From contig NC_047083.1 of the NCBI RefSeq assembly GCF_902459465.1, positions 8,928,001 to 8,992,000 of the forward strand: a DNA stretch of 64,000 nucleotides, given 5' to 3'. A model generated the notes under the pieces. The model did not search any database and was not told the origin of the DNA. It worked only from the letters and a program-made list of their open reading frames with translations. Made by a program: the position numbers and the translations under genes. Origin of the DNA: Asterias rubens (taxonomy: Eukaryota). Of this stretch, positions 55,246-64,000 are shown in pieces (positions within the stretch are counted from its first letter, which is position 1; each line of letters begins with the position of its first letter).

Positions 55246-58200
55246 ATGGCTGATATAGTCCTTATGGAAACCGGCAAAGAGAATCTCGCAGAAACAAACA
55301 ACAAAAGAACTTGCGACAGTCCACCTAGCGTCAAGAAAGTCCACTTGGAACCGCCCCATGATGAGGAACAATACTTACAACTCTGTCGTCGCATCATGGA
55401 GGAAGGACAGTTCAAGGGGGATCGCACTGGGACGGGAACGAGATCCATCTTCGGCGTCCAGAGCCGATATAATCTCAGAGGTAGATCATCATTCTCATTT
55501 TCCTCCCCCGGTTTCCCCTCCCTTTAGTTACGAAGCAATGAACTAGCCAGTGGGACCAGTGGAAGACTTTGGGACAGTAGGTGGTATAGCAGACGGTAAA
55601 CCTATGTTCCAAACTTCCGACACCCCCAGACCCAGTGTCACACTAGTGTAATATTCTTGGTTGGGTTTGGGTCCTTCTTCCTCACGTACGTGCGGAGTAG
55701 TAGTAGTAAGTTAATCGGGAGGGCTTGAACTTGAAGTTGACATTGAATAATTAAAGTTCGCCACAGAACAAACAAATGACACAAGTTGAACTTGACAGTA
55801 AGTTGATGTCACAATAAACGATTTTATTAAGAGTTCTCTGCTCGAACCCTCCTGTTCTCCAGTCTAGCTCAAACTAAACTCTTCTTCTTACATTCCTTTT
55901 CTTTCTTCCAAACCTTGTTATTCATTATCTTCTAAATCACAATATTCTTAATTCCAAACCAACCGCGCGCACGCTCGCGCTTAGTAATTAGCTCACGCTT
56001 TGCAGTTGGTTTAGTGTATATCACTACACTAGAAAATGATAACATCTCCCTTCATTTCCTATGTTCTCCCCTTGTGTCCAAATCTCCCTCATCTCTTGTC
56101 TGTAGTTGTGGCTACTTTGTTAGTTTAATATTGTATCCAACATAATACATGCATTTTTAATGTAATTTTATTGTAAAAAAATTTCCTCTGCGGACAATAA
56201 AGAAAATATTCTGGCTTATAGTGCTAATGAATATTTATAAGGTTATGTAAATTATATGTAAATTTGTTACTAATCTCTCTACAGGGCAATTTCCTCTGCT
56301 GACAACAAAGAGAGTGTTCTGGCTTACAGTGCTAATGAATATTTATAAGCTGTGTACGAATACTATGTAATATTATGTAAATTATAATGAATAGGGTAGA
56401 TGGCCTTAGCTTTCGATCCAATCCGGACCTTCTTCAGAGGCATAAGACAAGTACAAACAAATACATATCCATTTATAGAAAAAGAGAGGGGAAAAGGGAT
56501 TAAGGAAAGGATCCAGAAAGAAGCGGGAAAATAACAGCCAATCAAAGTTCCTATTTCAGAAACAATATTGGGGGCTATGAACCAATAGGAGTGAAGTGGC
56601 GAGGACAAAGGATGTTTAGAATGAAAGGAAGGGTTACTGGACCATAAAAGTGGTAAATGTATTGTTCGACAACAATGGAGGGAGACATGAAAGGGTAGGA
56701 TTAGAGAGCAAGTTGCATCATGATGCAACTAACAATGGTCAATTAATAAGAATAGCAAGATCAAAGGTATGATGATTTTAAAAATAGGTATGAGGGACCT
56801 GTGGAAAAAAAGGGGGGGGGTTACTTACATCAGATAGTTACAGTGATGAATTTATAAAAACAACTTTAAACTAGGTTAATTTATACTTTATGTACAGAAT
56901 ATATACAACATATGAGTTCTTAGGCAGAAGTGAAGTGGAGGGTAATGAGAAGTTATTTAACACCAGTGTTTATGTTAAGTCCAAAGGGTTTTACTGTCTT
57001 GAGTTGGTGAATCCAGTGTGATTCTCTATTCTTGCGGTGTGTGTCATCACCATTGCAAGCTTCAATCACCAGAAGTTCAACATCAATGACACTATGATTG
57101 GGGCTGTTGAAGTGGATAGAGACTGGGTACGGTTTCTTAGTCTTTATGGAAGAGACATGATTCGCAAAGCGAAGACTAAGTTTGGTCTTAGTCTCTCCCA
57201 CATATTGTAGCCCACATCTCTTACATGATATGACATAGACTACATTAGACGTGCTGCATTCAGAGTCGGTCTTGATGTTGTATGAAGAGCCAGTGGTATG
57301 ACTCTTCACCTTAAGTGAGGGCTTAATGTGCAGACACGTTTTGCATTTGGAACGGGTACATTTGTGACAGCCCAGTATATCTGTCGGGGGTTGTGTTTGG
57401 ACTGTACCTGGGGGAAGTTTGGCCCTGACTAGTATGTCACCAAGGTTCTTAGGGCGGCGGAATGCAACCATGGGAACCTCAGTGATTGCTGAGTGTAACC
57501 TGCTGGAGGAGTGAAGTATAGGCATGTTATTATTGAGAATTGAGGGAAGTTTGGGTAGTTTGGGGTGGAAGGTGGTGACCAAAGCAACTCTATTGGTAGG
57601 AGGTTTTTTAGCTCCCGTGTTAGTCAACAGAGTATGACGAGGTACGTTGAGAGCCCTGTTGATAGCAAGTTGGACCCTACGTTCGCTGTGTCCCCTAGAT
57701 ACAAGGTGTTTCCTTAGCTCTGATGAGCGCCTCTTGTACAGGGTATCTGTGGAACAGATACGCCTGATACGTAAGGCCTGACTGTAAGCAATTGCCTTCT
57801 TACAGTGACTAGGGTGACAGCTATTGGAGAGAAGGTACTGGTGGGTGTCGGTGGGTTTACTGTAAACATCTGTGACAAGGCCATTAGGAGACTTGGTTAT
57901 TGTCACATCTAGAAAGTTCACACTGGTGAGAGATTGTTCGGTAGTGAACTTTATGGTGGGGTGAAATGAGTTGATATGGGCAATAAACTCATCCAAGCTG
58001 TCTTGGTCACCACACCAGATGGAGAAAATATCATCAATAAATCTCCACCAAACTAGTGGTCGGTTGGGGGCGGAGGACAGGAGTCTGTCCTCCAACTGAG
58101 ACATGAATAGGTTAGCATATGAGGGTGCCATTTTGGTACCCATGGCAGTACCCTGTACCTGTAGAAAATGCCTGTCAGAAAATGTGAAATTATTCTTCAT

Positions 58201-64000: not shown

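Follow-up and report, generated by a model that had tools for sequence, protein, structure and literature searches.

The DNA analysed here is a stretch of 64,000 nucleotides of the Asterias rubens genome (GCF_902459465.1, NC_047083.1, positions 8,928,001-8,992,000, forward strand), called the window below, whose coordinates are used throughout. Near its end lies the thymidylate synthase gene, TYMS, on the plus strand. The coding part of exon 1 (55246-55480) opens with an ATG at 55246, its reading frame ends in ...SRYNLR, and the donor, G/GT, falls at 55480/55481; positions 1-39 of the PF00303 profile (Thymidylat_synt) are matched at 55366-55482, and RNA-like contigs stop at this point and then join onward. 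Exon 2 (61901-62081), recognized by its translation, lies in a region where PF00303 positions 31-136 are matched across 61873-62619. In a profile search of the whole assembly, PF00303 positions 1-266 are covered by five exon matches, all on one contig, C23: TYMS is single-copy, with an apparently complete domain. A second copy relieving the constraint on this gene was considered and rejected, the sole extra PF00303 match, on contig C11, scoring 28.5 bits and containing stops. This match (G000:C11:1285951-1286178) has two stop codons and a translation that looks unrelated, and is probably noise rather than a pseudogene.

Public contigs of four runs were placed on window positions 55200-56500, a range that takes in the left-hand junction of the insertion described below. 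X1 is a run from the sample presumed to be the source of the assembly; X2 is a marine metagenome run, differing in study and year from that presumed source; X19 and X30 are RNA-like runs, the assignment of runs to DNA or RNA being a guess. All these contigs derive from a graph of 31-letter words. Within intron 1, a multicopy repeat, unrelated to the inserted element, occupies 55640-56035, as judged from an X1 contig depth of 4,000-9,000 against about 130-170 in its flanks (30-60x); the same interval is also covered by the RNA-like runs.

The border between intron 1 and exon 2 is present twice. The 53 nt at 56271-56323 are identical, letter by letter, to those at 61887-61939, as the original prediction had it, and the identity ends sharply on both sides. 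The repeat consists of 14 nt of intron ending in CAG, followed by the first 39 nt of TYMS exon 2, and its 36-nt core occurs in the window at 56288 and 61904 only. The wider repeat family comprises 56180-56241, 56288-56349 and 61904-61965, the first two being 90% identical. Its oldest member, S0 (56180-56215, plus strand), has decayed: it corresponds to the opening 36 nt of the exon 2 segment, with 31 of 36 letters matching; it is not preceded by an AG, the acceptor having been lost, and the letters upstream align only loosely. A diverged copy here had also been proposed before; the differences number five in 36 positions. The next unit, S1 (56216-56323, plus strand), contains a copy of the intron end, a spare acceptor with its AG at 56283-56284, and 39 nt of exon 2; it is confirmed by X2 contigs over 55985-56300 and 56271-56385 with 0 mismatches. 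It is followed by the left part of a third unit, S2 (56324-56385, plus strand), which holds the native end of the intron as far as the point of insertion and is contiguous with 56271-56323 in an X2 contig (record 20). The first 26 nt of this part match 56216-56241 at 25 of 26 positions: 56216-56241 follows S0 just as 56324-56349 follows the perfect upstream copy. Since matching sequence stands after S0 and after the copy in S1, the region is read as a three-unit tandem array, S0-S1-S2, with a period of 108-117 nt, whose last unit carries the real acceptor at its end and is split by an insert of 5.5 kb. At position 56219 the assembly has a T, with which X2 agrees, and X1 contigs appear to carry a C, which would produce a 33-nt exact repeat with 56317-56349; this discrepancy may reflect either a heterozygous site or a base error in the assembly.

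On the far side of the insert, 16 nt of native intron (GTTAATCTCTCTACAG, 61885-61900, plus strand) remain in front of exon 2 and end in the AG of the real acceptor (61899-61900). Spare and real acceptors are identical from -14 to +39; at -12 the spare site reads CTAAT and the real site TTAAT.

The insert between the perfect copies (56386-61884) lies on the minus strand, antisense to TYMS, an orientation absent from the original prediction. It is made of two parts in head-to-tail arrangement, a 5'-truncated copy and then a full 4.4-kb unit. The full-length unit (56386-60794, minus strand), whose end was set by about 40 other genomic copies, has open frames at 56953-59190 and 59169-59672, in different frames. 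The product of 56953-59190 features both a reverse transcriptase domain (Pfam RVT_1, residues 258-409, 9.5e-11) and, at its C terminus, a GIY-YIG endonuclease domain (residues 650-732, 1e-5), a combination within one protein that assigns the insert to the Penelope-like elements (PLEs). The upstream copy, or pseudo-LTR (60795-61884, minus strand), was delimited at its truncation point by comparison with other copies; it is a second copy of 56383-57472, from which one 1-nt indel separates it over about 1,091 nt, and the fragment adjoining exon 2 (61366-61884, minus strand) holds the GIY-YIG part again. A partial tandem with pseudo-LTR, together with frequent 5' truncation in the family, also agrees with PLE membership, which the original prediction had proposed.

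Several other features of the insert were recorded. In two other full copies (L025 and L026) the protein is encoded by one uninterrupted frame of 921 codons, which in the TYMS copy is split, at 59169-59316, into two overlapping frames; this could be a real frameshift or an indel error of long reads. Upstream of the open frame, in element orientation, an internal A-rich repeat array spans 59700-60650, with units of about 134-194 nt and nested sub-repeats of 24-61 nt. A perfect 20-nt palindrome, AGTTGCATCATGATGCAACT, is found in both pseudo-LTR copies, at 56711-56730 and 61123-61142. An Rfam search of 55000-62500 at E<=1 gave no match and no hammerhead model. By eye, a hammerhead-like core, CUGAAGA...GAAA, can be recognized on the minus strand at 56400-56443, and again in the pseudo-LTR at 60812-60855; minimal dimeric PLE hammerheads may escape Rfam models.

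An allele free of the element was found in the independent sample. X2 record 20 is a contig of 147 nt that corresponds, with 0 mismatches, to 56271-56385, followed by GT and by 56271-56300; joining window position 56385 to 61885 reproduces it at 147 of 147 letters, and around the empty site it reads ...AAATTAT GT TAATCTC.... The contig is thus an element-free allele, which already bears the duplication and the spare acceptor. A second X2 contig, record 19, covers 55985-56300 with 0 mismatches and stops at the 30th letter of the repeat, as a graph of 31-letter words would if the repeat has two left contexts. The occurrence of the duplication on an empty allele from an independent sample indicates that it is real and older than the insertion. 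The haplotypes sampled that bear it are two in all.

These contigs weigh on the reading of the tandem acceptor as an artefact, in which empty and filled haplotypes were merged during assembly to give a false second copy. The genome is highly polymorphic, the locus is represented by a single haplotig in the assembly, and tandem PLEs are known to cause trouble in assemblies (PMC8557442), all of which would favour such a merge. X2, on the other hand, holds every 31-letter word across both 56323/56324 and the empty site in one mismatch-free contig, and a contig built from a word graph contains no word that the reads lack. The X1 contigs have breaks at 56238/56212 and at 56323, which fits the break points expected, by the logic of the word graph, if the junction from exon fragment to TTACAG is also present in X1. 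The first break fits a 33-nt word common to 56209-56241 and 56317-56349, provided that position 56219, where each contig has one differing letter, is a C; the second would result if the repeat goes on in two ways, as TTACAG and as GAGG. These points, too, are compatible with a real duplication, and the merge, which had been suggested as one origin of the structure, is contradicted and very improbable. A 26-nt sequence spanning the junction of exon fragment and TTACAG was not found among JGI metagenome contigs.

The fit to the empty allele places the borders of the element at 56386 and at 61884 or 61885, one G being ambiguous. The borders given earlier were 56383 and 61884. Integration was exact at the level of the letters, with no target letters lost, a target site duplication (TSD) of 0-3 nt and 16 native bases kept. 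The insertion itself is indicated by the assembly together with the exact fit to the empty allele. Its flanks are identical in empty and filled alleles over about 400 nt and the pseudo-LTRs are near-identical, which points to a very recent insertion.

The elements of this family elsewhere in the genome provide a term of comparison. Dozens of copies are present at 98-100% identity, and the family is currently active; 17 of 20 other loci fetched contain single 5'-truncated copies. The common end of the other copies starts at about ATAATGAATAGGG, corresponding to 56384 in the TYMS copy, and their targets are AT- or TA-rich. At the opposite end, other copies continue with GGAACC after ...GCAACCATG, where the TYMS copy turns into TTAATCTC. 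TSDs of 9-22 nt flank several of the other copies (17 nt in L009, about 22 in L028 and about 21 in L037), and a few have none. The TYMS copy, judged against the empty allele, has 0-3 nt and thus no normal TSD; as a few other copies also go without, this would not exclude PLE membership. At L028 (G000:C11:8360400-8368000) the target resembles the 3' end of the element itself (AATAATGAATA) and adjoins the TSD of about 22 nt, which suggests that pairing between target and RNA end may help priming.

A joint origin of duplication and insertion would explain the tandem acceptor as a long TSD, as the product of repair synthesis, or as the outcome of unequal crossover between empty and filled alleles, the last having been put forward in the original prediction. 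The right-hand 53-nt copy does start only 1-2 nt from the 5' end of the element, and the family normally makes TSDs of 9-22 nt. The left-hand copy, however, lies 62 nt from the 3' end of the element, and the intervening spacer is homologous to the local intron, so that the repeat is no TSD; moreover, the duplication is present, letter for letter, on the empty allele, which contradicts the crossover as well. We regard a joint origin as very improbable. A model based on a long TSD was rejected specifically because the repeat abuts the element on the right only, 62 nt of locally homologous intron lying between them on the left. A 3' transduction was likewise rejected as the source of these 62 nt, which match the neighbouring unit of the same intron and occur in the empty allele.

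We therefore favour, with a probability of about 0.8, a history of two stacked events at the border of TYMS intron 1 and exon 2, namely an older tandem duplication of the acceptor and a recent antisense PLE insertion. In the older event, a segment of 108-117 nt, containing the intron end, the acceptor and 39 nt of exon 2, would have been tandemly duplicated twice, and these two rounds would have left within the intron one decayed copy and one perfect spare acceptor. In the recent one, an active PLE would have entered the last unit in antisense orientation by target-primed reverse transcription: the plus strand, nicked after ...AAATTAT, may have primed cDNA synthesis, copying may have run through the full unit and then 1.09 kb into a second one, and at G/TTAATC the end of the cDNA may have been sealed to the target through microhomology of 1-3 nt, no staggered second cut being made. 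The product would have neither a TSD nor a loss of target. Insertion without a normal TSD, with microhomology of 1-3 nt and with 16 native bases before exon 2, supports the original prediction, which had no TSD, TG microhomology and an entry 15-17 nt before the AG.

The consequences for splicing follow from the position of the two acceptors. One contig each in X19 and X30 joins 55480 to the 39-nt segment, with only 41 letters beyond the joint. Because the first 39 nt are the same in both copies, the joint alone cannot tell which acceptor was used. The X30 contig runs on into genuine exon 2 and differs from the window by one synonymous change, a synonymous T/G difference 8 nt past the repeat is present in one run, and the loose end of the RNA contig past the repeat reads GAGGTC.GGCTGAGG. 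The depth bins are exactly 17/44 and 24/44 of the contig depth, which implies zero coverage at 56324-56343. The productive mRNA is thus the form seen in X19 and X30, and no read-through of the spare exon was seen, a result for the two runs as wholes rather than allele by allele. Contigs from a word graph lose rare or decay-prone isoforms, so that a transcript under nonsense-mediated decay would be missed. Read by eye, use of the spare acceptor (55480 to 56285) leads to a stop codon 27 codons into exon 2, in accordance with the truncated reading quoted previously, while use of the downstream acceptor at 61901 restores the normal mRNA and removes the spare copy as intron. Productive splicing must accordingly pass over an intact upstream acceptor, as had been pointed out.

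On the empty allele, the spliceosome would have to choose, from two identical acceptors spaced 117 nt, the downstream one, likely because only the downstream copy precedes the rest of exon 2 and its donor. The real site of the filled allele still has its pyrimidine run and its AG, and of native branch-like motifs it has TTAAT at -12 alone; CTAAT is retained by the spare site at both -12 and -58. In the DNA of the element, the only strong branch-like motif is CTGAC at 61838, the candidate branch that had been singled out together with the AGs intervening after it. As the spare site keeps the native branch region and the real one only 16 native bases, the filled allele is probably impaired or weakened in splicing, to judge from its letters. 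Animals with such an allele would either be heterozygous for it or have it in a leaky form.

A fully functional filled allele, possibly homozygous in the reference animal, is the strongest of the alternatives, albeit an unlikely one; its branch point would lie in element DNA or at the TTAAT 12 nt before the exon. In its favour, the acceptor core from -14 to +39 is unchanged, and the empty allele, too, must already pass the spare site. One X1 contig (record 5) also passes 56300 without the break expected from a second left context, which hints weakly that an empty allele is absent from the source sample, although the missing break is explained equally well by graph clean-up beside a very high-copy repeat. 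Against it, AGs stand at -56, -44 and -36, after the CTGAC at 61838, and a branch point at -12 is unusually close to the acceptor. We consider it improbable that the spare acceptor is fixed and the reference animal homozygous for the insertion, or that the spare site is used at a low level to give a decay-targeted isoform tuning TYMS output. Were the spare acceptor fixed and the insertion homozygous, correct splicing of an essential single-copy gene would bypass a perfect acceptor in favour of one 5.6 kb downstream, and the locus, with its 16 native bases, would be a natural test of the upstream context that a 3' splice site needs.

On the favoured reading, an older duplication followed by a recent insertion, the locus offers matched natural alleles, empty and filled, on the same haplotype background and both with a perfect duplicate acceptor. 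A heterozygote would permit a clean test, in a deuterostome invertebrate, of 3' splice-site choice, branch-point distance and decoy avoidance. It is also a record of how a member of a PLE family that is still active integrated exactly and without a TSD. Neither the allele pair nor the mode of integration changes the accepted picture. In marine invertebrates of high heterozygosity, polymorphic insertions of retroelements into introns are common, and so are small tandem duplications.

Parallels are found in three known systems. Intronic insertions of L1, Alu and SVA near 3' splice sites disturb splicing in human disease genes, and in TYMS, too, a polymorphic, young, antisense retroelement stands between branch region and acceptor in a conserved gene. 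Here, in contrast, the element is a PLE, a pre-existing spare acceptor competes, and the case is known from sequence rather than from an effect on splicing. The insert itself resembles canonical endonuclease-containing PLEs of the Neptune/Nematis type, with which it shares a reverse transcriptase followed by a C-terminal GIY-YIG in one frame, a Cys-rich linker (CHKC...CKTC) before the GIY-YIG, frequent 5' truncation, a pseudo-LTR, and AT- or (TA)n-rich targets; partial tandems forming a pseudo-LTR and AT- or (TA)n-rich targets have been described for Penelope-like elements (PMC8557442). It differs from them in having no normal TSD and a split frame, and the likeness is one of features, not a phylogenetic placement in a clade. 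Finally, the intronisation of tandemly duplicated exon sequence has been discussed for intron gain and sliding (PMC2891723). There, as in TYMS, a short duplication carries a splice signal along with exon letters, use of the outer site brings back the original mRNA, and the inner copy is turned into intron. In TYMS, however, no new intron is formed, the existing one growing by 108-117 nt per round, and the spare site retained is a full, unmutated acceptor. Taken against these systems, the locus is a real, young and polymorphic retroelement insertion beside an older duplication of the acceptor, and a fresh instance of known phenomena.
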